Assembly: GCF_000315625.1 (NCBI RefSeq)
Contig: NW_005434529.1
Location: forward strand, 69,154 to 133,153
Length of the DNA: 64,000 bases
Source of the DNA: Guillardia theta CCMP2712
Lineage: Eukaryota; Protista; Cryptophyta
Direction: 5' to 3'
Below are positions 6,801 through 63,630 of this stretch, in pieces; the first letter of the stretch is position 1; each line of letters opens with the position of its first letter. Below the pieces are notes generated by a model that did no database searches, was not told the origin of the DNA, and worked only from the letters and a program-made list of their open reading frames with translations. The translations under genes were made by a program, and so were the position numbers.

Positions 6801-8808
6801 CTTTGTAAATATGAGTGCAAATCAGCACAAGATTCGGAATCTGTACTAGTAGCCAAGTGCGTCAGAATACTATTATCTCGGCCAAGTCGTAATTCCAAGA
6901 TCTGGTCGTATCGCATGGATTCCGAGTATTCCACCAAAGTCTCAGTGAACCATTTAACTGCTTGGACGTGCCGAGCCTCACTTGCATTTCGTTTTGCAAT
7001 TTCAAGCGAGCAATCCCTCTGCCGAGATCTTACCTCCTCAAATTTCTCATGATTCAACCATCGCAAGACACCACTGGCAATCTCGGAATAAATCTTTAAC
7101 GCGTCATCGTATTCATTTGCTTTGAAGTGCGAGTCAGCTTTTTGCAGCTAAGGGCTCAAAGTCAAAAAAAATCAACATTGTAAGGAGAGTATGAGTACCT
7201 GACTTTCCAATTGCGCAATCCGTCTATCTGCTTCTTTCTCGGCTTTCTCATTCTTCGCGTTTGGAGGACTAGGAACACTTGCTCCTGTTGGAGGGGCAAC
7301 AGGAGCCGAGTTCGACTGAGCTTTACCATGATTGGATTGTTGACGAACAGTTGTTTGTGGGACTGTACTGTTAGCATCTGTTCCCAGCGCTTGAGACTTC
7401 TCTATCTCACAAGTACATCCAGATTTGAAATTGTAGTTCTGCTGAGAGTAGTAGTAATCTTCACGCAGTGCATTGAAACTGTTAAGATCCACTTCATCAT
7501 CGTGATTAGATGTTGGACTCAAAGCCCCAACGCATCGATAGCCTGCTATGACGACAACGAAGAGAAAGCAATGGGCACAAGTAGGGAAGCTTGTGGGATT
7601 CATCCAAGTCTCAATATCGTCCAGCGGAGCATTTGAATTGCCTATGTACATCATAAATCCAGCAAGCAACACAAAGAACGACAAGACTGGGTTCCAGTTG
7701 ATGCCCTTTTCCCTCTGACTTTGAATTTTTTCATTTGACCTGCGCGCAGACTTCTGTTGCGTCGCCTTGTCGAAGAAGCCGTCCTGATCGTCTGAGTCAA
7801 AGTTGAAAAAGCTGGATTGAAAAATCGTGAGCGGAGCAAGATAATCGAAGATTTCCGGAAAGACTCTTTCAATGCCATCGATTATCACAGGAAACACATT
7901 GCTGATTCCAAAGAGCTGTTGCCGTACTTGTGCAGCTTTGATGATTCTGCGAGTACGCGATGTGCGACACCCGAAGCTCCAGACCTTGTTCGATATGCAG
8001 ATACAATTAGATGTTGAACAGCTGGAAATCAGCATAGAAGGTCGGTCCCCCCGCAAGTTTCTGCGAGTTGGATCTGCTCCCAATTTGCACAGAACTTCAA
8101 CGAGCTCGGGATGACCACAAAGGGCACTCATGTGCAAAGCCGTGCTCCCTTGCAAATCACTCTCCTGAACCCCAAGTCACGTAACCCTCATCGAAGATCT
8201 TCCTACTTTGAGCACAATCTCACCTGAACCGAGATCCCACGTTTTCGCGCAAGGTTATGCAGTATCACCGGACCGAGTTCAAGCAATGGGGCATCTATCC
8301 TGGCCCCTTGTTCTAACAAGAAAGATACAGCATTCCCCAACCCAAAGAGGCAGCATGTGCACATCGCAAGATCCAATGCTTCCTGTAACAATGCACGTTC
8401 AGCATCGATCAATCTATCACTATTCTTAGACCTGCTCATCCATCCCATAGAGATCTGCCAAGTGATCGGGATCAACTTCGCCAAGGACCCATTGCTGCGA
8501 CACGTCACTGATTCGAAGAAATGACGAGGAGTCTTACAGTGAGCTCCTCCTCCATCCTTTGCGCACGATGTATATGTTGACTGCGTAGGAATGAGACAAG
8601 TTGGCAGTTGATACGATACATACCGAAATAGGTCTTGCAAATCCTTGTCATAAGGTAAACGAAAGAAAATGTTATCAACTCTTCTGACGGATCGAAATAT
8701 GAATACTTGTTGACAACAGGAAGTCAGTATATGAGAAAATTGTGTGTTGCAATTCTTACATGCCAAAACGACGGCGGCAATGGTTGACAAAACAATGAAC
8801 CAAATCAT
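3886..8808 (-). CDS. Multi-exon membrane protein: N-terminal hydrophobic segment, ankyrin repeats, two TM helices, TPR and coiled-coil regions, Ser/Gly-rich disordered tail
   Basis: Ankyrin consensus GSTALHMSALCGHPELVEVLCKLGADPTRRN. TM segments VLSFFVLLAGFMMYIG and CFLFVVVIAGY. TPR-like ADSHFKANEYDDALKIYSE and AAQLIHDGMYEEAVYALSRLL. The junctions checked (e.g. ~7199-7148) join in frame across short GT-AG introns. Confidence 0.7.
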
Positions 8809-9949
8809 TGTCTGAGCCTGTGATATATCCAATGAGTCAGACTCAGTGAAGAGGACGAAAAAAACTAATTCGAAATGTGCAAGACCTATGACACCCACTC
8901 GTGTCTTACGAAGTTAAAAACGATTTTGCGCTAGATCGCGGACTAAACTACGGCAAGGAGAAATAGGATAGTCCAAAAATAGCACTAGCGCTGACATTTT
9001 TCACTTTTAACTATCCAACGCTTGTCCAATCGTCTTGATAAAAAAATATCATTCTTCCAAACAAAACATCACACAATCGCACTGCACCCAATCACTTTTT
9101 CGACCAATACATGTCAGAATCACCACCCATGACACCCTTTAGAAGGGCCATAACCAAGTTAAATCCTGATCAAGACGCTCTGCCCACGGCCCACCTCCTG
9201 CTACAGCATCTACTCTCATGTATCCTCTACCTCCCAACGTCACTGCAATGTTTCATACCAACTACACCAATAATCCTGTCTACATTCCATCAGGTTATCA
9301 AGCCCCTGCCCTCCCAGTTTCTTCTCTCTCTAGTAAATCCTCACCTAAATTTGATCAAGCTCTCACTTTTGAACTCTTTGTGCCATCCCATCTTGCTCTG
9401 CTCTACGATCTTTCCTGCCTCTCTGCCCCACTTTTCATGCCGCTCTCCTCCTGTCTCGCCCCCTCCCACTCAGCATCAGCCATGCCGCCACGGCTTCTCG
9501 GAACTTCCTGGACTCGATATCGCTCCTGGCACTCTTTGGCATTTTTTTAAAAAGCAAGATTATAGCATTACAACTTAGTTTTGTCTCATGTATAAGCTCT
9601 CCAAAGAAAGTTGTAAGTGGATATTGTAAATTAGTACCATAGTTCCATTTTGTCTGGAAATGGTACAAATTATGCTACTATTTGTCAGGGGGTCGCAGTT
9701 TTTATACGATCCCTTTGTGTATCTTCATACCACTTTTAATTTTAAAGGTATAAAAGTTATGTTCAGTCAATTACTTCAGTACAAATCATATTTACATTTC
9801 GTGCTTAAAATTAAAATTCTCCCCGTGCGAGCCAGGACATCCACCACCCCTGTATTCCTCTCTTTGCAAACCGGTAGCGGGCTAGTCACAAGTAAGGTAC
9901 CCACCCCATGCAGACCTCCAAGAAGATAGGGAAAAGGGGGGTACCATAT

Positions 9950-10550
9950 TCCGGGCCAAGAATTTACTAGTACCGGGCCCGGAAGTTCACCGTCCGAGGC
10001 TGGCGCCAGTCGGCATTGAGTCACTGAGTCACTGGATAGTCCGTCGCCGGATCCGATCTGATCCCAGATGCAGTGCGCGGCGGCCGGCGCGGCCCGGGCG
10101 GCGCCCCGCGGCCGGTCACTGGTCACCGTCACCTGTACTTTACTCAAAGTCAAATTAAAAAGAAGTACGAGGACGGGGGAACCAGTATTCAGGCTGCCAC
10201 GGCCGCGCGGCGCGCCTTCCGAGTCCCGGACTGAAGTGCCGCGTCACGGCGTGCAGCAGTGACTGAAGGCAGTGCCCGGCCAGACTCTGTGCCTGTCACT
10301 ACTAGCCTAGTAGGCTCAACTTGCCGCACTGCGGCAGTGCTAACTAGTAAGTCACGGAGTCCGGCGGCCGCGGACTCCGATTCGGGACTCGGAGTCGGGA
10401 GTCCCATCCGATCATCGGATGATCCGGGATCGAGTCAACGGTTGACGGTGACTCGCCGGCAACTTTGAAGTTTGGAACTTCGCTAGTGACTCGGAAACTT
10501 TGAAAGTCCCGGAGTCCCACCCCTATCTTTGAGCATGACTCAGTGATTCA
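9950..10550. other. Intergenic CpG-rich island of overlapping odd-centred palindromes
   Basis: CTACTAG-C-CTAGTAG (10299-10313), TGCCGCA-C-TGCGGCA (10322-10336), CATCCGAT-C-ATCGGATG (10405-10421), GTCAAC-G-GTTGAC and others. Confidence 0.75.
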
Positions 10551-11625
10551 AGGAGCAGGTAGGGGGTATGTAACACTACCCCACCCTACCGTTTTACCCC
10601 CCAGCTGTTGGATGATGCCGGTCAGAATACCCCCATGTGTGAAAAGGCAGGGGAAGGTAGTGTAGTATCCTCAGAAGTTCACCAAGACTACTTTATGATT
10701 TCCAAAAATCATGGTATAGTTTTAAAGTTTGAAGAAAAATTTGTATCTTGGTGAATCCGATTGATGTAGACCGAGAAAGAGGGCGAAGTAGGGGTTCGTG
10801 GGAGCCATGGGGGTGGGTAACGGGGGAGAAGAGGGTTGATACATATACATGGGTAGGGGTGATCAAAAAGTATGAAAAGGATGGGTGAAATACAGGGAAA
10901 ATATGGGTGGGGGTATACGTTCTACTCAGAGGGGGGTGGGGTAGAATAACTGGGGGTAGGTGGGAGACAAAAGCGCGGCAAGCGCATGCTGACTGGGAAA
11001 GTGGGAAATGGAGGCATCGATGAATATGAAATGTTGAAAGCGAAGTGGCGACACGTTATCATAGAGGGCAATGAGAAGGAATAACAAATTCTGAAAATGA
11101 GATTCATGAGAGGAAAGGTTGAGCATAAAGGGCCTAGACGTGAGGAGAGATGCTGAGAAACTGAGAAATTGAATGGATGGTGAGAGTGGTAGATTGCAGG
11201 AAGCGTGGACTGCACCATGTATCTTTACCAGCATTCTCTGTCTCATATGTCTCCCTTGGAAAGTGCAATTCGCCTCTGTTCTTTCGGAAAGTGCACGGAT
11301 GATTGTATTTGTTACACCCTTCGACGAGCTCGAAGGTCTAATGCACTGTAGAAGTTGTGATTGTTTGCGTAACGTGACCCTCCAAGATACCTGCATTTGT
11401 CTCTTGCTTTGTTAGAAGTTCCCCCATTTTCGCCCTGCTAACCATGCTCTTTGTTCCTTGCAGATTCGCCGGGGACTCCGAGACCCCACTTCTTCGGGGA
11501 AACACATTTCAAGACTTCTGGAAGCTGGAGTGGTTCACAATTTGAAAGAAAACTTCCCAATCTTGGCAAGAACAGAAGGTATCTGATATGCACATGTGCT
11601 TCTTGAAGGTTGACCCGTTGTCAGA

Positions 11626-12310
11626 ATGGCAGGGATTGCCCGGTCTAGATTGACCGAAGAGCGCAGATCGTGGAGGAAGGATCACCCTGTAGGATTTTTT
11701 GCTCGTTTGGATCAGAATCCAGATGGAAGCATGAACTTGATGAGATGGAAGTGCGGGGTTCCGGGCAAGGAAAACACCATCTGGGCAGGGGGATTGTTCG
11801 ACATCACAATGGAGTTCTCTGAAGATTATCCGCATAAACCCCCAAAATGTCGATTTCCAGCCGGGTTCTTTCATCCGAACGTTTACCCGTCTGGAACTGT
11901 ATGTCTAAGGTTGGGTCTATCGCTATGGAAAGGCCTGGAGCTGATGAATTCTCCAGCATCTTGAACGAAGATGAGGCGTGGAAGCCGGGTATCACTATCA
12001 AGCAAATCCTGCTCGGTAATCCAGATGGCTATTTCTCACTTGACACAGTTTTGATTCTTCGAAATTGATTGACAATGTTGCCGATTCTACTCTGACAATA
12101 TCTCTTTAAAGGGATTCAAGATCTTCTGGACTCTCCTAATCCTCTCAGTCCCGCACAGGAAGATGCGTAAGCTGATTTTTGCATTCTTGTCACGTCTCAT
12201 TTGGTTACAGCTACAGGACATATATGAACAACAGGCAAGAGTACGAGAGGCGAGTACGCTCTCTCGTTCTACAATATCCTCCAGATCGTCTACTGAGGTT
12301 GGGAGAATAA
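11626..12310 (+). CDS. UBC9: SUMO-conjugating enzyme E2 (Ubc9)
   Basis: [24 protein letters not shown]...[16 protein letters not shown] with catalytic Cys. Introns 11910-11956, 12016-12111 and 12167-12210 give a continuous UBC fold ending in TAA at 12310. Confidence 0.96.
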
Positions 12311-12904
12311 CTGAGATTCAGCCGTTCTTGAACTCTTCACTTTTTCCGTTTCTTTGATAATCCAATCATGCTTCAACAAACCTTGACCTGAGTCAGTAAA
12401 TTGAAGGCGCATCAGATACGTTAGTGCACAGGGCTGCATGGCACCAGTGATATTTGATTTCAGACCTTCGCAAAAACTTGAACTTGGAAAGTTATAACCG
12501 TCCGGTCACCGCGGCCGTCAACGGCCGCGGATCATGAGTCGGGTGTGACTCTCTGAGCAGTTCAAGTTGCCGCCGGGCCGCTCATCCGTCCCGGGCCCAG
12601 GTCCGATCCGAGCGAGCCGCACTGGCCGATGCCATGATCCCGGCCGCGGGGGCCCGGCGGGCCGGCCCGGCGAGCCCCGCCCCCCCCCCTCTCCGGTCAC
12701 TGGCCCGACTCGGTGGCAGATGTGGCGGCCATCATCATCGGGCCGGCCCGCGGCCGCCCACCGTCCGAGTGACGCGCGGCCGGAGTCAATCCCCCGGACC
12801 GGGCCCCGGGCCGCCCGCCCATGATCGAATTCCCGAAGGTTACATGATCAGTTACAAAATATGCACGTGCCGAAGAGTTGGTTGTTGATGTTTTAAGAGA
12901 GCGA

Positions 12905-13057: not shown

Positions 13058-13423
13058 ATGCCGGGCGCACGAATGAGGAGGAGGAAAAAGGCGAGACAGG
13101 AGCGTCAACAGCAAGAAGGATCCAACGATGAAGAAGGGAAGGCGAAGTTGTTTGACGACGATGAGCAAGAAGAGGAAGAGGAAGAAAGCCTGACTGTGAA
13201 CGAGAAGTTCAAGCAGAGGTTTGAACACAATGAGAAGCTAAAGGATAAAATGAAATTGAAGGAGCTAGAGGCGCAGTTAGGAGACGACGACTCCTCGAGC
13301 ACGGAAGAGGACGAAGGAGATTTGCTGACGGATAAGATTGATCAACAAATATTGCAAACGCTGACGAAGATAAAGAAGAAAGACCCTGAGATCTACTCTC
13401 AAGATCGCAAGTTCTTCGAGAGT

Positions 13424-13459
<36 letters not shown>

Positions 13460-15950
13460 AAGAAGGAATCCAAAAAGAAGCATAAACCCAAGACTGTGAT
13501 TGATCTCGAGAGGGAGCGTCTCATGCGAGGAGAAGTTGACGCTGATTCTGACGACGATGCACCACCGAAAAGCGGGGAGGAGCTGACCTATCCAGAGGAG
13601 CAGGAGAGGCTGAAGGCGCTCTTCAAGAGGAAGGAGGAGGATGCTGATAGCGAAGATGACCTGTTCATGCCCAAGAGCAAGAGCATGGACGAGAAGGTGA
13701 AGGAAGACAAGGAGTACGAGGAGTTCGCCAAGGATCGCATGGCTGAGAACGACCCCTCACAGACGCTTGCAATGTTGCTGAAAGATGATGATGTAGACGA
13801 CGACGAGCGGTTCTTGCGCAACTATGTGCTGGGGAATCAATGGAAGCAGGAGAGAGAGACTGATGCGCACGGGGGGATGGGGATCGATGACAGTGAGGAC
13901 GAGGAGGCGGTGAAGGATGCGGAGGACTTCGAGGAGAAGTACAACTTCCGGTTCGAGCAGAAGGGCTCTGAGGAGATTGTGGGACACGCTCGTAACATCG
14001 ACGGGTCTGTGAGGAGACAAGACGAGAGGAGGAAGGAGAAGAGGAAGAGAAAGCAGGAGAGGGAGAAGACGAAGCTTGAGCTGCAGAAGGAAGAGCTGAG
14101 GAGGTTGAAAAACCTCAAGAAGCAGGAGATTGTGGAGCGGCTGAAACTGATCGAGAAGATCAGTGGAGCCCCGCACGTTGATGCAAACAAAGTAGACTTG
14201 GAGGATGAGTTTGATCCAGAGACGTACGACTCTCAGATGGCCTCCTTGTATGATGAAGAATACTACAATGCGGTGAGAGCATGCGGCGGTGGTTCTTTTT
14301 CTTCAGTCGTGATGTGACGATTCGCAGGAGGAGGATGCTCATCCCTTTGCTGATGCGGCAGCAGAAGATTTTCTTGACGCCATCGGATACGAGTCCTTTG
14401 AAGATGAAGATGATGATGAAGGAAATCCTGAGTTGTCCCTAGATGTTGGCCTGACGATTTCTACAGAGAATGACAGCGAGGATGTGGGGGACGAAGCAGG
14501 AGGAGAAGCAGAAGCAGGAGGAGAAGCAGAAGCAGGAGGAGAAGCAGGAGGGAAAACGAAGATTGAGGTTGGGAGTGTGGTTCAGGCCAAGTACCTGGGA
14601 GATGGCTTATTCTACGAGGGGGTGGTGAAGGCGGTCTCGAAAAAGAACTATGAGATTGAGTTTGTCGGCTTCGAAGGAGAGGTACAGAAGACACCCAAGA
14701 GCGAGGTAGAGTTGCTGTCGTCCAGGGAGGGAAAGAAGAAGAAGAAAGAGAAGAAGCTCAGTGCTAAGGAGCAGCGAGAGCTCGCGCGGAAGGAGAAGAA
14801 GATGGAGAAGGACAAGTCCGACCCGTCAAAGTCTGCTCGAGCCAAGATCACAGATGCGGAGCTGGAGAGCGTCGCAGCCAAGTACGGGGCCAAGGACTTT
14901 CTCGAGGAATACTATCAGCTGGATTATGAAGACATCATCGGTATGTGCTTGTTCATCTGCGCTGTTCCTCTTACTTCTAGTTGTCCACCTCCTTCGATTC
15001 CTCCTTTCACTGTCTTGCTCGTTGCCTTCTCCTCCGCCTGTCTCGTCGTCTTGTTCTCCCCTCCTCTTCCCCCTCCCTCCCCTCCTCATCCCTTTCTCCC
15101 TCTCCTCTTCTCTCCGCCGCTTTCCGCAACTAGATGGCGTCCCAACGCGCTTCAAGTATCGCACTACTGATCCCATCGACTTTGGACTTACTCCAGAGGA
15201 GGTTCGTAATACTTTACCTACTTCTCCTCTCCCCTTCTCCCCCTCCCCCTCCCCATCCCCCTCCCTTTCCCTTTTCCCTTTCCCTTTCCCTTTCCCTTTC
15301 CCTTTCCCTTTCCCTTTCCCGTTCTCTTCTCTTCCCTTCGCTTGAGCTTGACGGCTCTCGCAGATCCTCATGCTGGATGATCGCGACCTGCGGCAAATGA
15401 TGCCGCTGGCCTACGTCGCTGCTCCTTATCGACCGCCAAAGTCTAAAGTCGTCGCGAAGCTGCGGAGCAAGGCAAGACGTCTGGCGCGGGAGAAGCTGCA
15501 GGGCGAGACGGGAGAGGGGGAGGTGGAGGAGCAGCGCAACGAGAAGAAGAGCGTGAAGGGCAAGAGACGCAGGGACGGGAAGGAAGAGGACGGGGCGAAG
15601 TTGAAGAGGAGGAAGTTTGACAAGCAAGAGCGAGGGGACGGCGGCAAGAACAAGGCTGGAGGAAAGGACAAGAAAGACAACAAGGACCTGAGCAGCGACC
15701 GCCTGGCCTCCTACACGATGCACAAGAAGTCAGAGGTGAGCGGGAGAGGCCATGACATCGCGAGCATGAGACTCTCAGCAGGAGAAAGATGAAAAGAAGA
15801 TCGAGAAATATCAAAAAGCGCACGAGAAGCACTCGGGGAAAGGAAGAAGCAAGGTCAGTCCGCGCTGTCCTCGCCTCCATCTCCTCACCCTCATTCTTAC
15901 CCGAGCAGGAGAACGGGAGGAAGGAGGAGAGAGGAGAGACGTCTCGGTAA
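13058..15950 (+). CDS. KRI1: KRI1 homolog (40S ribosome biogenesis) with an internal Tudor domain
   Basis: Kri1 core EKYNFRFEQ...SVRRQDERRKEKR...EELRRLKNLKKQEI. Kri1_C [45 protein letters not shown]. Short GT-AG introns. Stop TAA at 15950. Confidence 0.92.
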
Positions 15951-17153
15951 GCCTGTTCCTCCCTCCTGCGAGCCTCGCGCACTGACGAGCGTCTACAGCA
16001 ACTCCAAGCACATCCTCTTCGACGAGGACTGAGTGTCAGTCTGTACATAAATCATCCCAACCCCCCTCGCCCCTGCCTTAGTGTCACTGTGACTAGCCCG
16101 AGTAGCCGCACTGCCTGACTGACTCACTGAGAGGATCGGACGAACTTGGAGAGCCGCTAGGCAACCGTCACCGATCCCATGCTTCCAGTGTGACGTCTAG
16201 TTCACCGAGGCAGGCTCGTCTTTCCTGGCAGTGACCTCAGTGCCTACCGTACTGTAAAAGTGCGCCCGGCCGATCGCGGCACTCTCAGCTTAGAGTTTGC
16301 GCGGCTTAGGCTTAGTGTCAGTGGTCGCCCCGGCGCCGCCGCGCGTCCGTCTTCAAGGCAGGCCCGCCCGGTGACTCCGCGCCACACTGTGACTCGCCCG
16401 CCGGCCTGCCAGGCACTGGCAGGCTGACTGGCGCACCGTGCGGTCCGGGTCCAAACATCAATGGCGCGCCGCGGCGGTGGCGTGGACTCACCCGACCCCC
16501 GGAGCCGGTACGGTAACTTGAGCTAATCTCTGATGCTTTGAGGTCTCTGTTCACTGACAGACCCGGCACAGATCTGAGCACAAGGACGTAGCCTTCAAGT
16601 TGACCACAGATCTGTGTCATACCACTGACCTGTTGGAGCACGCGGCGGCACGGTACGGTCGCGGCGTCAGGCCCCGGTGCCACCGTTGCGGCCCGCCCGG
16701 TCGCACCGTCTGAGATCCCCGGCCGGGCCCGCCGCCAGGCCCGAACTGAGTCGCACCGGCCCGGGCCGGCAGTGACCGTCGAGTTGAGTAAAACTTCATT
16801 TGACATAAGGGCGTCGAGAAGACGCTTCTCGCATGCAAGTTGAGAAAGAGAGGAAGAGGGAGGGAGGGAGGGAGGGAGGGAGGGAGGGAGGAGAAGCAAG
16901 AGGAAGAGCAGAAGAAGCAGAAGAAGGAGATGGTTTGTGTTACTTTTTGAGATGAAATATAAGAAAGTTTGTGAAAGGAAGAGAACAAGAAAGGGACGAG
17001 CAAGAGCTGAGTGTCCGTTTACAATGTGTCAAAAAGAGAAATTTGTAGTAGAGGACAAATATCATGTTAGCAAGAAGCTCCTTTCCTGTCCTCTTTGTCA
17101 TTGTCATGTTTTGACAGTTTACATGAAACACTTCATGCAGAGTTTTCGCCCTC

Positions 17154-23309: not shown

Positions 23310-23949
23310 TTCACCCCCCCTCGCACTCCACCAACCTAGAAATGAGCAACCATATGTAAGAAGTCAATCTCGAACAGTAAAATAAAGACGCGATCAAATG
23401 AACCGACAGACGAAGTATTCACAAGCATTCATGGATTGCAAGCGCTGAATGAAAAATCCAACTGCTCAACAAGAGATAGCGGATCCTCATGAAAGGCGAA
23501 AACCAAGGCAGTTTGAAGCCAAAACTTTCAAATACAACATTTTCACATGAATTATCAGAAAGCAGATGAGTAAAGGAGAGGCAAGAAGTCAACTATACAT
23601 CGGTTCTCTACTGTTGGCACCTAATCGAGAACGAGGGAACAAGTACAACAACACAGGATCGAGGAGCAAAGAGCGAGGAGCAACTGCAGGCGAACACCAG
23701 GACTCTGGAGAGTAGCATCAGTGGGGGGAAATTTTGCAAGAGAAGCGAGAGAAGAAGACAGGAAGGTGCGGAGGCCGCATGCGGATCACAAACAAGAGCG
23801 CGGCATAGAGGAGGATTACAGAGGCGAGCAGGTTTTGGGCCTATTTAACCAATATTCAGTTAAATATATTATATGTAAGCTAATAAGATAATTTATCTAC
23901 CACAAATAAGAATAATGTTCTTATATAATGGGTATTGTCATTAATTAAC

Positions 23950-24720
23950 ATGGGGGCCGGTACCCGGGGTAGGGGTACAATAACACATTCCGTCTGAGAA
24001 CCCCCAGTTTCCCAGGCAATTCAAGAACAATGGGTGGTAAGGGTAGCAACGGTTACTCGGCCCCCTATGGATGGGGTGGGTCCAATCCATGGGGGTACTG
24101 TCGGTCAAAGGGGTGAGATGAGAGGGTAGGGTGGATAAATCAAACGAATGTACCGGTAATGACGAGCTTGAAAGTAGGGGCACATTGTACACGATCCTGA
24201 AACATGCCCGACCAAGGATGAATAGAATTGGAAGGGTGGGTAGTCTGTCCGAGCGACAAACTTCTTCTAAAAGGGGGGGTAGTAGTCCTGATGTCAATAC
24301 ACCGGTCGATGAAATGGGCATACCACCACGATGTTAGTACCCCTCAAGTTCCCCTCCAGAGGGGTAGTAACGAATGTGATGTTAATGGCTGATAGGGTAG
24401 GGTGATCGAATTTGGAGGTGGGGTAGGGGTGGTGCTGAATGAGTGCATGAATTGAAGCCGAGGCGGACCAGCCTTGATCGGACCCCATCATTTACAGGGG
24501 GTGGGGTGAATGTATTTGTGGAGTTCAGAGGGTAGGGGTGCGGCTGAGTCTGAGAATTTACTCGAACGTAGGGGTTAATTAGCACTCTGATGTAGGGGTA
24601 CTTTATTCGTCAGGAAGAGGTCCATTGCATTGGTGGTGGGGTGGTATAGGATGTAAGAATGTTTCACGTGCGGTAGTTAAGATGGACCTTCAAGGAAGGG
24701 TAGTTAGTTTTTCACAATTC
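23950..24720. promoter_or_regulatory. GGGGT(A)-rich, strand-biased intergenic island between divergent SERCA and NSA2 starts
   Basis: Dense ggggta/ggggt/gggtagg words on the + strand, preceded by an AT-rich tract (23845-23950). No credible ORF. Regulatory role is inferred from position only. Confidence 0.45.
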
Positions 24721-25042
24721 ATCCCCAACTATATCTATAATTTCGAAAGTTCAAAACAATATTTGAAATATTGGAAGATATTGTAGACTCTTGAACTAAA
24801 TTAGCAGCCAGATCCACCCCTCCCGCAACTTGCTCGTGTGCTCCCTGCCGTGCCAGTCTCCTGTCTCTTCCACCCCGCTGTTCTCCTCCCACTGACCTGC
24901 TCCTACTTCAGAAGCTTCTGCTCCCCTCCCCCCCCTCTCATCCATTCATTGGTTGAAGAGTTGAAGCCTTCACTCTTGAAGCAGCATCCTCCTGAACAGT
25001 GCCGTTACTGCCGGCGACAACTTTGTTCTCTGATCGGTCAAA

Positions 25043-28909: not shown

Positions 28910-29810
28910 AGCTCGGAGATCCTCAACGCTCACAGTCAAGCTCTTTCCTCCTCTACCTCGTCTTTGTCCTCCTCGTCATCTCCTCCTCTCCTCCCCTCTC
29001 CCCTCCCCTCCCTCTCCCCTGCATTTCCAGGCTCGGGCAGGCTTTGTAAAACCCTGGTACCTCATAGTTGGTTACCCACCCTTTCAAGTACCACAATAGT
29101 ACCGGTGTTCAAGTACCCCTACCTACTTCCTCCATCAAAATCTGCTTGGACTACCCTCATTGTCACTAGGTTTCAAAGAGAAAGTACCCTGCATTTTAGT
29201 ACCCCTACCTCCAATATCCGTCCCCTTTCTACCCCTCAGCTCGCGGCATGGCGCCATCGGCGGCAGCGGATCCTGACGCCGATGGCGGCTGAGCATCGTG
29301 AAAAAATGTTGTATGGAGAGGAGAGTAGAGGAGAGTAGAGGAGAGGAGAGGAGTAGCAAAGGGCAGAGATAAGGTAGAGGAGAGAAGAGGAGAAAGGATG
29401 CCGACAGTCTAGGAAGGGATAGTGGTAGGAGGACCATAGAGGAGCGAGCAGACATGATGATGAGAACGATGGACTGTAGGGATGAGATGATCACTGTGAT
29501 CATGACCATGAGAAGAGTTGATGCGTCCTGGAGCTTCTATCTCAGCTATTTGAGATGATCGAATCGAGGGAATGTCATTTCATGGCACACGTCCAGGGAA
29601 GAGATGAAGGCTGCGAGTGGAAATCGGAATAGATCATTTATTTATGAAGCTTTACTGTATGTCTGAGTTGCAGGATCATTTTCTCGATCAGGCTTTCCTG
29701 TCGAATAGACTCCTCATCTTCTAATGACCTTGACAACTCTTCGTCGCCGTATTTGCTAGTTGACAACAAGACTGATATTCTTAAACAGGTATCGATAGAA
29801 ACGTCAGTGC

Positions 29811-40441: not shown

Positions 40442-41067
40442 AAGGGAGATTGGAAGGGAGGACGGGGGCAACAAGCTATGAAGCGAGGGATATCTTGACG
40501 GGCACATGTGCGTTGCAATCCTTGTATTGACATTGCATTCAAGTATAAAACAAGCCAGCATGGAGTTCTCACACAGTGCGTATATGACTGCAGATAGTAA
40601 GAGATTTGCCCCAACGAAAGAACAACCTTTGAAAAGTTGTTGTGGTAGCTCTACGGTGTGAAGATGAGAAAGAGAAGAAACACGAGAGAAGAAAAACGAA
40701 GAAGAGAAGATGCGGGCAGCAGGAAGCGGAAAGAAGTCAGTGGCAGGAAAAATTCAAGAGGTAAGAACCAAATGCAGAGCTGGCTGGCAACGGGAGGGTT
40801 AGAAATAAAGGGAGAGAATGGTAGGAGGGAGGGAGAGATAGGCGAGAGGAAGAGAGAGGAAGGGACGGGAAAACAAGAGAGGAAGAGGAAGGTGAAGAAG
40901 GGACGGGAAGACAATCAAGAGGAAGGGAAGGTGAAGGGAGGAGGAGGGGGAATGTACTGGGGAATGTAGAGAAAACTTGGGGAACAACCCCTACCTACCC
41001 ATGCAAACTAGAACGAGGGGGTACCACAAGAATACTATATATAAAGTAGGGGTCTATGCATATACAT

Positions 41068-41151
41068 GTCAAGGTGGCCGAGCGGTCTAAGGCGGTGGCT
41101 TCAGGTGCCATTCTGTTTCGGCAGGCGCGGGTTCGAATCCCGTCCTTGACA
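41068..41151 (+). tRNA. tRNA-Leu(CAG)
   Basis: Acceptor stem GTCAAGG/CCTTGAC, A box TGGCCGAGCGG, anticodon stem GTGGC/GCCAT with loop TT-CAG-GT, long variable arm, B box GGTTCGAATCC, discriminator A. TATA-like tract ~30 nt upstream and TTTT terminator at 41155-41158. Confidence 0.96.
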
Positions 41152-41926
41152 GTCTTTTGCTCCACCGACCTGTTCCTTCTCCTCTGACCTTCACTCAATA
41201 ATGTTAAGTTAAAAATCAGTACGAGCCCCTCGCTGGACTCCAGTGACCCGGCGAACTCAGTAACACTTACTGAGACTCAGGCCTTCCGAACGGTAAGGTC
41301 GGGCCCGATAACCGGCCCGGCCCGTGACCGGGCTGATAACGACAATCGTACGTCGGAGACTGGCCGCACACTGCGGCAGTGTTTTTTTAATTTAGCTTTA
41401 ATAAGACTAGTCCTCAGTACTATGATCATGTAGTATGGCCGGTGACCCGGCGGGCCGCCACCGACCGAGACCAGACCGTCGGACTCCCCAGGGGACCCGG
41501 TGACCGGCCCGGCCCGGCGGCGTCAGGCACTGCAACTTTGTGATCTGAATGCCATTGCATTCAAGTTCAAGTTACAGTCACGTTCTGCCTTGAGACTCAG
41601 TCGACAAGTTAGCCGCCTGTATTAGGAGAACGAGCCTGCCTCGGCATGATTTACTGTCTCAGGTTCAAAAGCCTCGAGTTCCCCTAGTCTTAATCTGCTG
41701 CCCTCTGTCGGGCCGCCCGATGGCCTCAGAGAGTGAGGAGGCGCCATGCGGGAAGGGAAGGGAGGGGAAGAAGGATGAGGAGGAGGTAAGCTGGTGAGAA
41801 GGAGAAGCAAGCTTGAGACGAGAGCATGCAAGGTCACGGTCTCTCCTCATCTTCTTCGCCTCGTGCGACGCTCTCCCCGTCCCTTGCATGCTGTTGACCA
41901 AGTAGGAGCAAAACCGTGCGGCTGCC

Positions 41927-44900
41927 ATGACGTCGGTAGGCGACGACGGAGAGAGCCAAGTGAAGGCAGACTTCGTTGCTGTCAGCACAGCAGACGATGA
42001 GACCAGAGCGTCTAGCGATGTTCACCTGTCGTTTCATAGAGAAAGGATCCAGTGGCATCGGGAGCTGATAGAGAAGTTGAAGTTGGATGAAGCTGCTGAC
42101 GCTCTCAACTCCAATATCAGCCGCACCTTCAACCAGACCAAGGATGACATCGTCGGCATCCTCCGCCGCTTTGACCTCTCCTCCCGCGACAAGTCAGGGG
42201 GCGAGGAGAACGGCTTGATGGACGGCAAGAACCAGCGAGTACTGAAAGAAGCGCAGGATCTGGTGGAGAAGACATACGGGCTTGAGAAGGGTCCCACGGT
42301 AAGAAGCTGCTAGGAGAGAGAGGATGCTGACTGTGAGCTGCAGCTGCTGCTCAAGTGCATCGATGGGATGGACGGGAAGTTGAAGTCGAAAGACATCGTC
42401 GTGCAGTGGGATGACTCCTGGGAGATGATCCTTCAGAAGCTGAAGCGAGCGTTCAAGCGCGACGTGATCTTCGAGTACGAGGTGGACGGCAGGATAGTGC
42501 GAGTGCAGGACGACGAAGCGTTCGATCGAGCCATGGAGCTGGCGGAGAGCAGCGGGGGGAAGCTCTACGGGGTGATCCAGCAGGCCATGTGGAAGAATCC
42601 GATCATCGAAGACCCGGAGCCTGACGAGCCGGAGCCCGAGGAAGAGCCTCTTCTCATCACCTGCTCCGACAGGATGGCGTACAACCCTGCTCCTTACAAG
42701 TTCCTGCTCGGCCTCGGCGGCTTCGGACTCGCTGCCTGCGTCGTCGCGTGCCTGGTCGGCTACCTTGTGCTGGGAGGTCCAGGGCCATACCTGGGGGCGG
42801 TAAGCTGAGGGAGTTTGACCGAGCATGTCTGAGATTGAGCCCGCAGATCTCGGGGACGATCCCGCTGCAGTTCTTCGTGCAGTCGTTCATCATCTCCAAC
42901 TCCGACAGCCTCCCGTTCGTTGCCGCCAAGTCCGTGGTCGCCATCGCAGGGGCCGTCATGGGATGCCTGAGCCTCAAGGCCTTCATAGAGGCCTCCATCA
43001 TGGAGGGCGCTATCGCCGCCGCTCTGTGCGTGTGCTCGACTCTGTTTCTCCTCTACGTGCTGTCGCCTCTGGTGTTCAAGTTTGTTCAGAACTCTCAGAC
43101 GCACAACAAGCGCAAGGCAAGGGGGCGGAGAAGGAAGCAGCAGCGCAGGCTGCGAGATATCCCCCTCATGGTCGCAGGGCTGCTGAGAAAGTTCTCGTCG
43201 CTCCTGCTGTACGTGGCGATCCTCGGCCTCCTGCAGTATCTCCCCATGTACCACATCTCCAACGTGGTTGCCGCCAACAAGCAGTACTCCGCCATGGGCG
43301 CCATGTACGCGAGGGGCGACGGGAAGGACAACCATGTCTACTGCTCGGGCTATACCGACCCGGCTGTCGTCATCGACGACAAGCCCGCGGTCATCTTCGA
43401 GTCCATGGAGGGCTTCGGGCAGGCGCTTGCGGTCTCGGAGATCATGTCCAAGATCGCGCGCATCGGCATCGCCTGCGCGTATGACCGGGCCGGGTTCGGT
43501 TGGAGCCCCCCCACCAACATGTCCAGGACTCCCTCGCAGATCGCGTCGGAGCTGGCCTACATGCTCACAAAGAACAACATCTACGTCACCGTCCCTCCGC
43601 GCACCGGGCAGTCCAGCAGCCTGATCCTTAAGGTGAACGTGCCTGTGGTGCTGGTTGGTCACTCGGTCGGAGCCTTCTACGTTCGAGCCTTCGCTCAGCT
43701 GTACCCCCAGTACACGGCAGCCATGGTGATCTGGGATGGTCTTCCCTCAGAGGACGAGACGCTGACGACAAAGTTCGTCTCGTCAGCCATGAAGGTTCTC
43801 TCCCCCACCAAGCTTCAGCTCTGCTACTACTACCTTGAGCCCATGGGCCTCGCCGACCTCTTCCTCAAGAGCGTCATCTACACCCCCCTCCTCAACGGAA
43901 CTTACCTGGACCAGCCCCAGCCCGCGGGGATCGGCGAGAACTACCAGCGCATGTTGGCGAGGATGATCAGCTGGCCCTGGTGCGACGCGGTCTACAAGGA
44001 GTACATCGACTTGTACTTCGGCCCCAGCCCGGGCATCGCGTTCGTGTACGCGGGAGATGCTGCCAAGTACGACATACCGATGGTCGTGTGGTCGCGATAC
44101 AACTCGGTCTACCAGAACATGCTCAACGTGGTGGATGACGTCAAGTACACCATCGGCGGTCAAGACGCTTGTCTGCAGGAGAACACCAACATCCAGAACC
44201 CTGCCGTCAACCATCCGGAGGGGACGAAGGGATGGCAGTGCGTTCAGTTCCACATCCTCTCCTACTCCAAGAAGCCCTTCCTCAACCCCAACAAGAGGAC
44301 GTGCTTCGTCAAGGGAAAGCCGGAGCTCGGCAACAACAACCCGTGCCCGGACATCTACAGGTCCATGTACAACGGCACCGAGCTCGCTCCCATGCAGGGG
44401 ACCATGGTGCAGGCAGAGCTTGTCGACACCATCCTCAACGCCTGGCAGATGCTCAACTACACCGCCAACTTTCCCTCCACCCCGTTCGCTCTCGTCTTCC
44501 AAGGCTTCTCCCCGCAGCAGCTCTCGCCTCCGGGCTGCGTCATCTCCATCGACAACTTCAGGTCGGTGATCAAGCAGAAGCTCATCGCCGTGCTGGGCCT
44601 CAGGTTCGAGGGCCTCGCTCAGATCGAGCTCATCGAGGGTCCGACTGCTTGCCCGCGCTACATCTCCCGACCCGGCTCAGGCCTCGTGCTCGGCCAGATC
44701 ATCCCCGGCGAATGCCCCGCGACAATCTGCTACGACCTGAGCGTGTGCTCGACGCCATGGACGAGCGCGAGGAACATCGCGAGGAGGAAGACTGGGAACG
44801 TCAGCATGACTCCCTCCTCGAGCGAGGAGATCGAGTTGCAGAACATCTACGCTGAGCACTACATGGGCGCGGAGGGAGGAGACGGGGTAGTGCATCTGGA

Positions 44901-46601
44901 CGCGTTTGCTGAGATGGCGTTCTTCGTTCTCTTTAGGATCGTCGGGTTCAAGAACATCGTCGTGCAAAATGCCGCCAACGTTCTCTTGTGCCCCAGCACT
45001 GAATGTGACCAGCTGCCCCTCGACCCGCGAGAGGCCACGGGAGTCTCTCCCAACACAACCCAAGTGAGGGCTGAGGAGCTCAACCGCCGGAACGCCTTCT
45101 ACACACAGTGATGAGCTAGCAGCCTGCCTGTTGCCCAGCTGACGAGCCTGTGCAGGTACAATGTGACCACGATCCTGTCGAGCGAGAGGACACTCTCGAG
45201 CAACACCTGGAAGGTGATCTCCAACGCGCTGCTGCCCTCCTGCCCGGAGAATACCTACGTGTATGGCGGGGGATGTCGCCAGTGCCCTGCCAACTCCACA
45301 TCGCCGGCAGGGTCGGTGAGTGAGACTGCGTGTGTGTGCGACCGCAACTACTACATGAACCTCGTCGACTCCGAGTACGTCTGCATCCACTGCCCCGACA
45401 ACATGCAGAGCGTCCAAGCCAGCACCGCCATCACCGACTGCAAGTGCAACCCGGGATACACGGGCCCGGATGGCGTCGCCTGCACTCCCTGCCCAGTCAA
45501 CACGTACAAGGCAGTGGTGAGGACGAGAGGCGATGTCGTCGTGCTCTTCACCTCTGACCTCTTCCCAGCTCGGAGACTTTCCTTGCACCTACTGCAATGC
45601 CTCCAACGTCGGCTGCCCCACCCGGCGTTCAAAGCCACTGCAGCAGAGAAGGAGGCGCTGGTGTGCTGAGGAGCTGCTGAGGGTCTCGAGGAGCTGACGT
45701 GTCGCTCTCCTGCAGGTGAACTGCCATGCTGCCGCCGTCTCAGCTCCCGGATCGACGCCGGGGATGCCGGGGAAGGTGATACATCCCATCTTCGGGGAGA
45801 TCCAGATGAACAACAGTGAGCCCTCGCCCTCCAGCTGATTCCCAGCTCCCTCCTCACCTTCTCGCAGCCTTCGGCACCAACTGCTCCTACGCCGCCCCGT
45901 CCCTGGAGGTCTGCACAAACTTCTCAGGTCTGAGCCGGCACCCGGAGTCGACCTTCTCCCAGTTCAACTGCACCTACGGCCCCGTGAACGTGAGCACCTG
46001 CTGCCTGCACGCTTGCTGGTCAGTGACCCTCGTGCAGAGCGAAATGGTCACGATCGGGTCCTTCAACAACCGCAAGGTCAACATGCAGTATTGTATCTTC
46101 CTGGGTCAGCCGCCTGATCAGTCCTGCAAGGTGAGGCAAACAACCCCATCCCTCTGCTCACTCCCCAGCAGGCCTTTGGAAACGTCTCCCTTCAGCGATG
46201 GCCTGTGACGACCAGCTGCGTTCCGGTGATTGATGCGAGCTTGTCTGCCCTCCCTCTCTCCAGCCCCTCCCATTACTCCCTTCCTCCCTCCCTCCCTCCC
46301 TCCCCTCCCTCCCCTCCCTCCCTCCCTCCCTCCCTCCCTCCCTCCCGCATGCTGCGTTTGCTTTGTTTAATGCAGATGATATTCTTCCCCTCCCTCCCCT
46401 TCCCTCCTTCCCTTCACTCTCTTCCTTACCTTCTTCTAGTGCTTCGCGCTGTCGGGGAGCCCCCAGTGCTGCTTCCTGGAGCACCTGGTCAGGCCCTGCT
46501 CGCCGGCATACCCGGGCGGGTCTCCCGGACACTGTGTGGAGGTAGGAGCAGAGATTCCCAAGGACCCGGTAGGTCTCGAAAGACGGGGAGAGCGAGGGTG
46601 A
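41927..46601 (+). CDS. Large membrane protein: PB1-like N-terminal domain, several TM helices, alpha/beta hydrolase, Cys-rich ephrin-receptor-like (GCC2/GCC3) repeats
   Basis: CAYDRAGFGWS and nucleophile elbow VLVGHSVG (43657-43671). CRQCPANSTSPAGS..CVC repeats. Intron 45108-45156 links the hydrolase ORF in frame to the Cys-rich exons. Confidence 0.75.
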
Positions 46602-52876: not shown

Positions 52877-55800
52877 ATGGAGAAGGGAAGGCGACGTAAG
52901 ATTGAGTATGTCGTAAAAGTTATTCCTTGGATCCATGCCAAGTTCATAACTGCATTTTTCGCAGATGAAAGAAGAATTGACCGAATTTCTGGTTTTGCCA
53001 AGTAAATCGAACAGGAAATTGTTCCTCCAAAAAATTTCCGAAACCGTTCAGCTGGAAGAAAGCAGAAGACCTGCATTGAACTTAGCATCTGCCAAGGCTT
53101 TGCTGCAGTTTTTCGAAGATGTGTGTTAACAAACAAGATTGCATTCTTCACTGTTTTTGAATTGATTGCAGGAGTCAAAAAAAGCAAATTTTGACAGTTT
53201 TCGTTCAGTTATGACCCTAATTTACGAGTATGCAATTCCTGAGGTAACTGTATTCACGCAAATCGATTGCTGCTAACACCATTTCCTACATAGGAGGACT
53301 CGAACTCAGCAATGTTGTCCGTATCGACATTGAACTCAGCGCAACTCAACAAGACTGTTGGAGTTGCATACAAAAACTTGATGAAGAATAATTTGAGCAA
53401 GCCGGAACCTGAAGAGGCAGCACTGCAAGCAATACTATCTTTGTTAAAAATGATTGCTTCGTTGACTGAGAATGACATTTGCTGTGCGTTGCTTCTGAAT
53501 TCTTGGCGACTTGGCAGTGACTTGTTTTTCTGACAGCTAGCTCATCTACCGCCATGGAGTGTATGACAATGATCCATAACGATTGGATAAAGCGAGATTG
53601 TTCGTTCGACGTGCGATATACCGCTTTCGATGTCTTAGGAGCATTTGCCAAAAACGTAAGTGGTTATCTCATCTGGAATTGATGACACCTCCCTTCACAG
53701 CCTGAAAATGTCAAGCTTTATTGCTCTCCACCTCGTGAAGCTGAAACGAAAATCTTCGAAATTCTTAATGGTGCAATCGACAGGTTGAATGAATTGCGCA
53801 AAGTGGATTTTGTCTCATGATCTTTCCCATTTACAGCTCTTTGCCAGTATGCGAAGCAGCCCTCAGTTGCTTGTATTCCATTTTTGAGATATTGGACAAA
53901 GATACGCTGTCAAAGGTGAATCCGGTTTTGGAATCGTTCACCAAGTGGGTAGCGGGGCGGGAGAAAAACTCTGTTTCGTGTTTTTCTGTGGACAATATTC
54001 GAAATACTTTCATGGGATGGGAAGATAAACAAAATGTCAAGGCAGCTGCAAAACTTTTATTTAAGGCAATGAACAAAACATATGAGGAAATACAAGCAAA
54101 GAGCATAGGTACTTTCAGTTGGATTTGATATCGAGTTTGTGATGTAGCTTTTGCGTGCAGTTGTCGGCGACATAGAGTATTTTGCTTCCGAGGTCTCAAT
54201 CAAGCGATTACGAATGATCAGAATCTGATTCTGTTGACAGGAAAAATTGTATATCACGTCCGAAAACCTCTCAGTCTGGCTGAGTCCTGACAGAGATGAT
54301 GATGGAGTAAGATTGCCTGATTTGTGTGATATAGGCTGAATAAGCTCCAGACAAATTCATCAATAATGCATGTATCCCTTGATCAAATTTCTGCCGCAAA
54401 CAGAATGGGAAACAAGAATTCTTTCTCTATCAAATTGCATTTGTTGAAAGACCTCCAAAACTGCTTTGGGCAGAATAAAGTGAAGAAGAATGAGGTGAAT
54501 TTTGAAGATACATGCTTTGCACTGACGTGCTATTCAGATAATCATTCATATGCGAGATGATGATAGTATCGAATCCTTTTTATGCCTCATGCCATTTGCA
54601 GAAGCTTGTAACATAACACGCTCCCAAGAATCAAAATCGACGCGTTGTGGCATACGCTAAATATTTGCAAAGTGCACATTTGATTCCATCCTTGCAGACA
54701 TTGCTATCATGGACAATCATGGCAATATCGTTCTTCCACCTCCATCAGCTCTGAGTGAGAACATCAAAACATCTGAGGCCCATACTGGGCCAACAGGTTT
54801 GCAGAGATGCTTGAGCAACAGAAATAGAACTTACCTATGGTTTGAAACGTACAGATTCATCGGCCCTGCAGCATGAACTCGATCACAACTATGAACATGG
54901 TATGACGGTAATCTTTTTGTCTATCATCAAGTGAGAGAGCATGTCAGGGGGAGAAGCTCTCTGCACACCCACAGAATTGATCGAGCAGCATAACTCTTCT
55001 CGAAATGTAATTTCCTCTGAGAGAAGCCAATCCAGCCAAAGCCATGCCAAATCGTCTCAGTCCACTTCATCTGAAGAGAAGGAATGTCATATCAGATCAA
55101 AAACTCCAAAGAGGTCCAATGAACAAGGTGAGTTCTTTGCTTTGCCACATTGCAAAATTGATGTTGTTGTGCCAAGATCGGAAGGTGTCCAAAGGTATTT
55201 GAAGTACCTCAGGATGACAGCTAATGAAGAAACCAGGTGGAAAGCGAACAGGAAACAAATCTGTAGGGAAAAAGACATCCTCAGATATGAAAGGTAAAGT
55301 TTAAGCATAATTTCAGGTGTTGCAAGGCTTTTAATCTTCAGACACAGCTGCAATAATTCAAACGTTTCCACGTCTTCCTCCCGTTGCAAATGATTCTTCA
55401 AACAAACAAATGCAAAAAGATCGATATAATTGCACAGGCTCTTCAACAACAAACCCTGTGGAGGACTCTCCTTTTGACAACAGTGACGGTCACAATCAAA
55501 CGACCCAACTGAGCCCAAGATCATATTCTAGGCCGGTGAAAAGCACCAAAGGAGCTTCGACCAAAGGTTTGCCCTCTGTCGATGCTGGCTGCCCAAGCAT
55601 AGGCCTGGGTTGACGCCCTGAATAGATAAGGTCTCCAAGAAAGATAACGAGAAGGCTCCGCAAGCAGACAAGCCGCTCGCAAGAGACGAGGAGACATCGA
55701 AGGCAGATCCTGCCCCCAGGACCAGCGCCAAAGGAGCTTCGACCAAAGGTTTGCCCTCTGTCGATGCTGGCTGCGACAAGCCGCTCGCAAGAGACGAGGA

Positions 55801-62456: not shown

Positions 62457-63630
62457 GATGAAGATGTAGATGTTGGTGCTGATGGTGCTAGTGATGAAGA
62501 TGTAGATGTTGGTGCTGATGGTGCTAGTGATGAAGATGTAGATGTTGGTGCTGATGGTGCTAGCGATGAAGATGTAGATGTTGGTGCTGATGGTGCTAGT
62601 GATGAAGATGAAGATGTTGGTGCTGATGGTGCTAGTGATGAAGATGTAGATGTTGGTGCTGATGGTGCTAGTGATGAAGATGTAGATGTTGGTGCTGATG
62701 GTGCTAGTGATGAAGATGTAGATGTTGGTGCTGATGGTGCTAGTGATGAAGATGTAGATGTTGGTGCTGATGGTGCTAGCGATGAAGATGTAGATGTTGG
62801 TGCTGATGGTGCTAGTGATGAAGATGAAGATGTTGGTGCTGATGGTGCTAGTGATGAAGATGTAGATGTTGGTGCTGATGGTGCTAGTGATGAAGATGTA
62901 GATGTTGGTGCTGATGGTACTAGTGATGAAGATGTAGATGTTGGTGCTGATGGTGCTAGTGATGAAGATGTAGATGTTGGTGCTGATGGTGCTAGCGATG
63001 AAGATGTAGATGTTGGTGCTGATGGTGCTAGCGATGAAGATGTAGATGTTGGTGCTGATGGTACTAGTGATGAAGATGTAGATGTTGGTGCTGATGGTAC
63101 TAGTGATGAAGATGAAGATGTTGGTGCTGATGGTGCTAGTGATGAAGATGTAGATGTTGGTGCTGATGGTGCTAGTGATGAAGATGAAGATGTTGGTGCT
63201 GATGGTACTAGTGACGAAGATGAAGATGTTGGTGCTGATGGTGCTGGTGATGAAGATGTAGATGTTGGTGCTGATGGTGCTAGTGATGAAGATGTAGATG
63301 TTGGTGCTGATGGTGCTAGTGATGAAGATGTAGATGTTGGTGCTGATGGTGCTAGCGATGAAGATGTAGATGTTGGTGCTGATGGTACTAGTGATGAAGA
63401 TGAAGATGTTGGTGCTGATGGTGCTAGTGATGAAGATGTAGATGTTGGTGCTGATGGTGCTAGTGATGAAGATGAAGATGTTGGTGCTGATGGTGCTAGT
63501 NNNNNNNNNNNNNNNNNNNNNNNNNNNNNNNNNNNNNNNNNNNNNNNNNNNNNNNNNNNNNNNNNNNNNNNNNNNNNNNNNNNNNNNNNNNNNNNNNNNN
63601 GATGTTGGTGCTGATGGTGCTAGTGATGAA
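62457..63630. repeat. 36-bp minisatellite (about 29 sequenced copies before a 100-N gap at 63501-63600)
   Basis: Unit GATGAAGATGTAGATGTTGGTGCTGATGGTGCTAGT. Confidence 0.95.

Follow-up and report, generated by a model that had tools for sequence, protein, structure and literature searches.

Islands of odd-centred palindromes 5' of Guillardia theta nuclear genes look like scars of repeated local copying

Clusters of short GC-rich palindromes are familiar from organelles, e.g. the GC clusters of yeast mitochondria, the PstI palindromes of Neurospora and the palindromic repeats of Volvox organelles. These clusters fill intergenic DNA, seemingly by spreading locally, and they constitute consensus families. 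Template-switch mutations, described by a four-point model, generate perfect inverted repeats (PMC5453318); like quasi-palindrome correction they make or perfect short inverted repeats by one-step local reverse-complement copying and can build hairpins from nothing. Such events are sparse and scattered and occur with any spacer. A few nucleotides of inverted flank are also added at repaired breaks, as in the P-nucleotides of V(D)J recombination and in the footprints of hAT, MULE and Transib elements (PMC5499845), and those of the hAT type can be odd-centred. ODIRA, a process of leading/lagging template switching, yields inverted triplications with a direct-inverted-direct architecture (PMC10766183, PMC4689423); these span kilobases and need pre-existing inverted repeats flanking an origin. 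The CpG islands of vertebrates and plants are promoter-side and GC-rich, have a CpG o/e of about 1 and extend over a few hundred bp.

We analysed a stretch of 64,000 nt of nuclear DNA of Guillardia theta CCMP2712 (the window), for which an earlier note had described an intergenic segment, here called island 1. In three unrelated sequences of this segment a trinucleotide alternates with its reverse complement, separated by single C, C, G and G spacers. Island 1 belongs to a type of spacer that recurs 5' of G. theta nuclear genes and is untranscribed, rich in GC and not depleted in CpG; three further examples lie in the window (Table 1). The islands share local reverse-complement sequence with template-switch mutations, yet hundreds of such copies are packed in 300-700 bp, with a spacer of exactly 1 nt and a C or G centre. 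Unlike hairpin-derived additions they came without an element, a target-duplication length or a recombination signal that we could find, and their density and iteration go far beyond described footprints. The minimal island chain has the architecture of an ODIRA triplication, but at 5 nt. In contrast to the organelle clusters the islands are nuclear and obey a symmetry rule without a consensus. They resemble CpG islands in composition, position and size, whereas CpG islands have no palindrome grammar and not every promoter in the window has a palindrome island. None of the compared systems combines a nuclear, promoter-side location, absence of a consensus, a spacer of exactly 1 nt, a C/G centre and iteration to saturation. 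The earlier note had known of no named feature class for the segment; this agrees with the literature searched, where we found no description of palindromic islands in Guillardia or other cryptophytes.

Table 1. Coordinates of the islands, their palindrome chains, flanking motifs and neighbouring genes in the window.
Feature	Position	Strand	Remark
Window, G. theta CCMP2712 nuclear DNA	scaffold JH993109.1, GCA_000315625.1		identical sequence
Island 1	9950..10550	.	spacer between divergent ankyrin-repeat and UBC9 genes
Island 2	12480..12830	.	between UBC9 3' end (12412) and KRI1 mRNA contig start (13010)
Island 3	16050..16790	.	downstream of KRI1, 5' of plus-strand aminotransferase gene
Island 4	41230..41610	.	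after tRNA-Leu(CAG), ~110 bp 5' of annotated GUITHDRAFT_166216 start
Chain 1, CTACTAGCCTAGTAGGCT	10299..10316	.	centres 10306 (arm 7), 10310 (arm 6)
Chain 2, TGCCGCACTGCGGCAGTGC	10322..10340	.	centres 10329, 10333; arms 7 and 7
Near copy of chain 2, GCCGCACACTGCGGCAGTG	~41363-41381		in island 4; 19-nt word, 2-nt difference
Chain 3 as quoted, ATCCGATCATCGGATGATC	10406-10424		exact string match
Chain 3 extended	10405..10431	.	centres 10413 (arm 8), 10417 (7), 10421 (5), 10426 (5)
(TGAGTCAC)x2.2	10017..10034	.	same grammar, 1-nt arms, centre every 2 nt
Quasi-palindrome, 52 nt, 77%	10071..10121	.	CCGG/GGCC words; BLAST
AT-rich interruption	10131..10178	+	splits island 1
ACCCC/GGGGTAC patch	9820..9945	-	on minus-strand ankyrin gene side
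GGGGTA-type G-rich patch	10555..10990	+	from island 1 to UBC9 mRNA contig start
GGGGTAY	9938, 10563, 10627, 10910, 23972-24601, 29113-29205, 41018, 43701
Ankyrin-repeat gene	7172..9137	-	mRNA contig to 9137; low-depth contig to 9529
UBC9 (SUMO E2) mRNA contig	10994..12412	+	mapped on window
UBC9 introns	11577-11622, 11908-11954, 12015-12110, 12167-12210	+	from mRNA contig
KRI1 mRNA contig	start 13010		mapped contig
tRNA-Leu(CAG)	41067-41152		directly upstream of island 4; tRNA scan

All three chains and all seven shorter words of the type NNN-S-N'N'N' which the earlier note had listed for island 1 were present. Counts were compared with 1000 dinucleotide shuffles of 9950-10550, and the enrichment was large. 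Island 1 has 58 odd-centred palindromes with an arm of at least 3 nt compared to 10.8 in the shuffles (maximum 22). With arms of at least 4 and at least 5 nt there were 27 vs 2.7 and 15 vs 0.7, respectively, and four pairs with arms of at least 5 nt had centres 4 nt apart vs 0.00 in shuffles. Even-centred palindromes showed a mild rise only (17 vs 10.2). Odd palindromes with an arm of at least 3 nt cover 55% of the bases of island 1 (GC 0.61, CpG o/e 1.10), and over the four islands together spacer-1 repeats are raised about sixfold, as in template switching, where new sequence is the reverse complement of its neighbour.

The four islands pooled contain 67 inverted repeats with an arm of at least 4 nt and a spacer of 1 nt vs 11.3 expected (z 15.7). 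Spacer 0 was modestly raised (23 vs 10.8), and spacers of 2-12 nt were at background. Because only spacer 1 stands out, the repeats point to copying around one base and not to loop-forming hairpins. All 16 S-centred pentamers of the form xy-S-y'x' were enriched, by 1.8- to 11.4-fold, with 318 found and 95 expected in the four islands. W-centred pentamer palindromes were not enriched there (55 vs 54), and even tetramer palindromes were barely up (1.3-fold). The palindrome centre was C or G in 131 of 153 cases (86%), while G/C made up 69% of arm positions and 59% of free positions. This excess amounts to about 5.6 sd over composition by our own arithmetic, and we rejected the idea that base composition explains the C/G centre. 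The palindromes with arms of at least 3, 4, 5, 6, 7 and 8 nt numbered 153, 67, 32, 9, 6 and 1.

Mutually overlapping centres at distances d of 2, 3, 4 and 5 nt were found 22, 12, 7 and 2 times, with 1.2, 1.1, 0.09 and 0.01 expected, and they occurred in all four islands. Thus the spacing of exactly 4 nt holds for the quoted chains, but as a rule it fails: it is a special case, and distances of 2 and 3 nt are commoner. The rules that do hold concern the spacer, which is exactly 1 nt, and the centre, which is C or G. Two overlapping complement reflections d nt apart impose a period of 2d with c(i+2) being the complement of c(i), so by algebra overlapping odd palindromes already produce the spacer series C, C, G, G as well as the approximate period of 8; neither is an extra rule. 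The commonest island words GASTC, GTSAC, CASTG and CTSAG are sub-words of (AGTCACTG)n, which has the same grammar with 1-nt arms; in island 1 the tract (TGAGTCAC)x2.2 is the source of the first three. Elsewhere in the window odd and even palindromes occurred at the same frequency (3.3 vs 3.0 per kb), with centres that followed base composition. Within the window the symmetry rules are confined to the islands.

The sequence of island 1 is not an assembly artefact, because it was present in two DNA data sets, of 2021 and 2011. A 2843-nt contig of the 2011 run covers 9450-12291, with an extra T at 9733 as the sole difference. No insertion event was seen in the islands, the 2011 DNA contigs being otherwise identical to the window. 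Since this second data set is so nearly identical, growth of the islands is without support from polymorphism or orthologues. Downstream of island 1, the UBC9 transcript contig begins after about 450 bp; the ends of RNA contigs are not equivalent to mapped transcription starts. In two RNA-type contig runs no transcript crossed island 1, save one low-depth contig at 10019-10209, and raw RNA reads over the island were too shallow to add much. Rfam and tRNA scans yielded only the tRNA-Leu and nothing in island 1. The ORF at 42748-45111 is 100% identical to GUITHDRAFT_166216, and according to the mRNA contigs introns in the window are 43-96 nt long with GT..AG ends.

All four islands are located on the 5' side of a gene. 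Their GC content is 0.57-0.73 and their CpG o/e 0.97-1.10, compared to a CpG o/e of 0.67 in the rest of the window; by sequence, all four thus fall within the definition of a CpG island (at least 200 bp, GC at least 0.5, CpG o/e at least 0.6). Island 1 is situated centrally between oppositely oriented GGGGTA patches. GGGGTAY has 12 matches in the window vs 4.5 expected, nearly all of them in spacers upstream of genes, and the matches upstream of the minus-strand Dus gene (29113-29205) and at 23972-24601 are mostly G-rich on the sense strand of the downstream gene. The region 23950-24700 is a dense zone of the GGGTAGGGG type without a palindrome island; the motif may serve promoters, or the DNA may be prone to G4 formation. 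Two of the islands share a plus-strand AT-rich element, about 35 nt long (ACTCAA..TTAAAAA..AGTACGAG). It lies in the middle of island 1 (10133-10171) and at the left edge of island 4 (41188-41225), in the latter case 40-70 nt downstream of the tRNA-Leu. The pattern ACTCAAN{3,12}TTAAAAA has these 2 matches vs 0.01 expected.

If the islands were a selected cis element, the cell could read either their structure or their words. They might be a replication initiation zone between oriented G-rich (G4-like) patches, a platform for cruciform- or hairpin-binding factors, or a cluster of dimer sites such as TGASTCA of the bZIP AP-1 type, which occurs three times in island 1. The position of all four islands 5' of genes, the opposed GGGGTA patches around island 1 and the undepleted CpG, as in CpG islands, fit such an element, and a selected element would indeed show equal placement. 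Furthermore, words common to the islands are nearly absent elsewhere. Yet the enrichment of all 16 half-site pairs is unlike the effect of one or a few factors, and we rejected a transcription-factor site cluster because a few specific words do not explain it. The earlier note had also considered triloop hairpins or cruciforms. The single strand is predicted to fold far better than shuffles (z -5.06), which lends this idea slight weight. However, real hairpins require spacers of 3-5 nt, and these were not enriched; pairing extends up to the central base, and most arms are 3-5 nt long and too short for a stable cruciform. Thus, although the single strand folds well, the extrudable arms and loops of at least 3 nt of a cruciform or hairpin element were not found. 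Finally, the divergent ATPase/S8e-like spacer at 23400-25000 has G-rich motifs and no palindrome island. This island-free promoter and the island-free relatives (see below) argue that islands are not required for promoter function. On balance, a selected cis element appears unlikely to us; should the islands be functional nonetheless, they would form a class of cis elements defined by symmetry and not by sequence.

The earlier note had spoken of shared symmetry without shared sequence. In support of this, self-BLAST gave no alignable copies longer than about 20 nt between islands or elsewhere in the 64-kb window. Words of 8-10 nt, e.g. CGGTCACTG, GCCGCACTG and CCGGSCCGG, are however common to the islands and almost absent elsewhere, so the absence of shared sequence holds only in part. 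Sharing of 8-mers between islands equalled that within islands and was about fourfold higher than a rough composition-based estimate. We therefore rejected a local-only vocabulary, in which each island copies itself alone.

A decayed ordinary repeat, i.e. a MITE, a foldback element or a GC-rich satellite, would account for the 16-nt inverted words which bracket island 1 (10016-10031 and 10536-10551), for the 19-nt word of chain 2 that recurs in island 4 and for tandem arrays. Yet island BLAST at word size 7 detected nothing beyond about 20-50 nt in the window, the hits being mostly self-palindromes, and one k=31 DNA assembly contig crosses island 1 unbroken at single-copy depth. Both bracketing words are drawn from the vocabulary of (AGTCACTG)n, which is self-complementary, so their pairing is a matter of construction. 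Their flanks differ (GTCGGCA vs GGAGCAG), i.e. there is no target-site duplication at these words. TRF reported four arrays of 18-34 nt with a period of 7-13 and no satellite array over island 1. We consider a decayed repeat barely credible. In the same vein, the islands did not turn out to be copies of one transposon or MITE family, an outcome the earlier note had allowed for, as they did not align in the window.

Transposons might also have acted by leaving. In an excision-footprint graveyard, a flank-hairpin transposon of the hAT or MULE type would repeatedly enter and leave open promoter-side DNA, and each cycle would leave a target duplication plus palindromic nucleotides. Hermes, as Zhou et al. 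2004 are said to have found, first nicks the flank at a depth of one nucleotide; with a single unpaired base left at the hairpin tip, odd-centred palindromes would result. The required chemistry is documented, since hAT, MULE, Transib and RAG enzymes form hairpins of flank DNA, which host enzymes open and join, leaving footprints (PMC5499845). A double palindrome is formally equal to one insertion and excision with a (d+1)-nt target duplication, if the overhangs of the opened hairpins anneal; being algebraic, this equivalence cannot tell one mechanism from another. Direct repeats of short length were enriched at lags 5, 6 and 8 (lag 5 z 7.8, lag 8 z 4.0), and TRF showed an exact 8-bp tandem duplication at 10017-10034. 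On the other hand, lags 3-13 were all raised, no single one stands out, and we found no fixed target-duplication length; a simulation free of target duplications (see below) gave similar lags. A Pfam scan of the 16 long ORFs of the window revealed no transposase domain, the four islands contained no element bounded by TIR and TSD, and the C/G centre would demand a target preference that is not known. This reading, a specific version of the pivoted micro-duplication described next, is in our view decidedly unlikely.

We explored whether a single operation can produce the island statistics. In the simulation a pivot (C or G with a probability of 0.9) was inserted at random positions together with the reverse complement of the adjacent 2-4 nt (mean arm 2.5 nt), and a 120-nt seed with a GC of 0.47 was grown to the length of the real islands. 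The parameters were fitted by choice and the C/G pivot preference was put in by hand. Simulated sequences had 31 spacer-1 repeats per kb compared to 32 in the real islands, with other spacers near background in both. GC was 0.60-0.62 vs 0.64. Arms of at least 3 to at least 8 nt numbered 177/72/31/12/4.6/1.7 in the simulation and 153/67/32/9/6/1 in the islands, and chaining at d of 1-5 nt was 6/14/13/2.4/0.4 vs 3/22/12/7/2. The ratios of the S-centred classes SS/SW/WS/WW were 3.3/4.4/3.6/7.7 vs 2.5/5.5/2.7/7.1. Per million position pairs, 8-mer sharing between sequences was 125-172 in the simulation, 248 in the islands and 49 in random sequence with a GC of 0.64; the excess over the simulation may indicate that some words are favoured for another reason. 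In this model a single operation is thus sufficient for the island statistics, which speaks to sufficiency and not to history. The iterative fold-back or template-switch synthesis proposed in the earlier note stands as a sufficient generative description, which covers the spacer-1 spike, the arm spectrum, the chaining, the rise in GC and the word classes, although no event was observed directly.

Taken together, island 1 has the look of a scar, left by a local copying accident that occurred over and over, rather than of a protein-binding code or a repeat of the usual kind. The evidence for the phenomenon as such is good; the argument for a mechanism is that it suffices in the model. We give an even chance to the view that the islands arose by accretion through iterated, pivoted inverted micro-duplication. 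Each small local event would add one C or G pivot plus the reverse complement of the adjoining 2-8 nt. Iteration of this step on its own products would create overlapping odd palindromes, and a chain of the form n-C-n'-C-n-G-n'-G-n would arise wherever two centres fall 4 nt apart. As the intermediate we envisage a hairpin or a U-turn whose tip holds exactly one unpaired base. Snap-back priming with loops was rejected, because it needs a loop of at least 3 nt and spacers of that size are at background; a spacer of exactly 1 nt favours the single unpaired tip base. It could be generated in two ways. A polymerase at a stalled fork, a nick or a break may turn from one strand of the branch point to the other, copying one base of the pivot pair before it returns along the other strand. 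Alternatively, a covalently closed hairpin may form on a broken end, be opened off-centre and be joined. We infer that insertions happened and that the pivot was added rather than pre-existing; which enzyme acts and why the events gather on the promoter side are likewise matters of inference. We know of no established biochemical explanation for the C/G pivot.

If iterated single-base-pivot duplication were true, the islands would be an unusually clean natural record of hairpin or template-switch mutation with hundreds of events per island. The signature of spacer 1 and C/G centre would be sharp enough to constrain the enzyme, and mutation by pivoted copying would be able to make promoter-side DNA GC-rich and CpG-island-like with no need for methylation or biased gene conversion. 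A bolder proposal is that G. theta possesses a lineage-specific, locus-directed breakage or turn-around activity that recurs at the same promoter-side sites; its source might be a flank-hairpin transposase that became domesticated, or polymerase U-turns linked to an origin and framed by oriented G-rich patches. We regard this proposal as a long shot. In that event the islands would document, as a living archive, a process that is programmed or partly so, and would form a compartment of the genome that had gone unrecognised; they may coincide with zones where replication starts or with recombination hot spots.

The earlier note had suggested looking for the same grammar in orthologous regions of related species. 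Nine other cryptophyte contigs (L001-L009, about 75 kb; 63% identity for KRI1 and 41-43% for a hydrolase) contained no islands and no excess of odd over even palindromes, nor was there an island in the spacer upstream of the orthologous KRI1 in the sampled cryptophytes. With the islands absent, no ancestral states were gained from this comparison. Among the sampled cryptophyte contigs the islands appear to be restricted by lineage, judged from the DNA at hand. The first exon of KRI1 had 89% identity with a transcript of Hanusia phi. For the hydrolase, no paralogue of G. theta was found in the protein collection searched.

Some minor observations were made along the way. Four near-identical cryptophyte contigs with KRI1 from JGI metagenomes (L001-L004) have an upstream spacer of 771-1081 bp with strain-level indels and no islands. 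The KRI1 exon at 13266-13647 of the window is an acidic, GAG/GAC-rich coding stretch on which contigs pile up to a huge depth, with many loose ends, in every run; similar low-complexity coding repeats elsewhere render this depth meaningless. The window also contains a long array with a 36-nt period (96-97% identity) at 62457-63500 and a tandem array with units about 99% identical at 55542-57041, both unrelated to the palindrome islands. The tRNA-Leu(CAG) is preceded by GGGGTACC and a TATATATAAAG stretch. Finally, the UBC9 mRNA contig has about 630 nt (10994-11625) before the start codon, including the 46-nt intron at 11577-11622, which is a long 5' UTR for so compact a genome.
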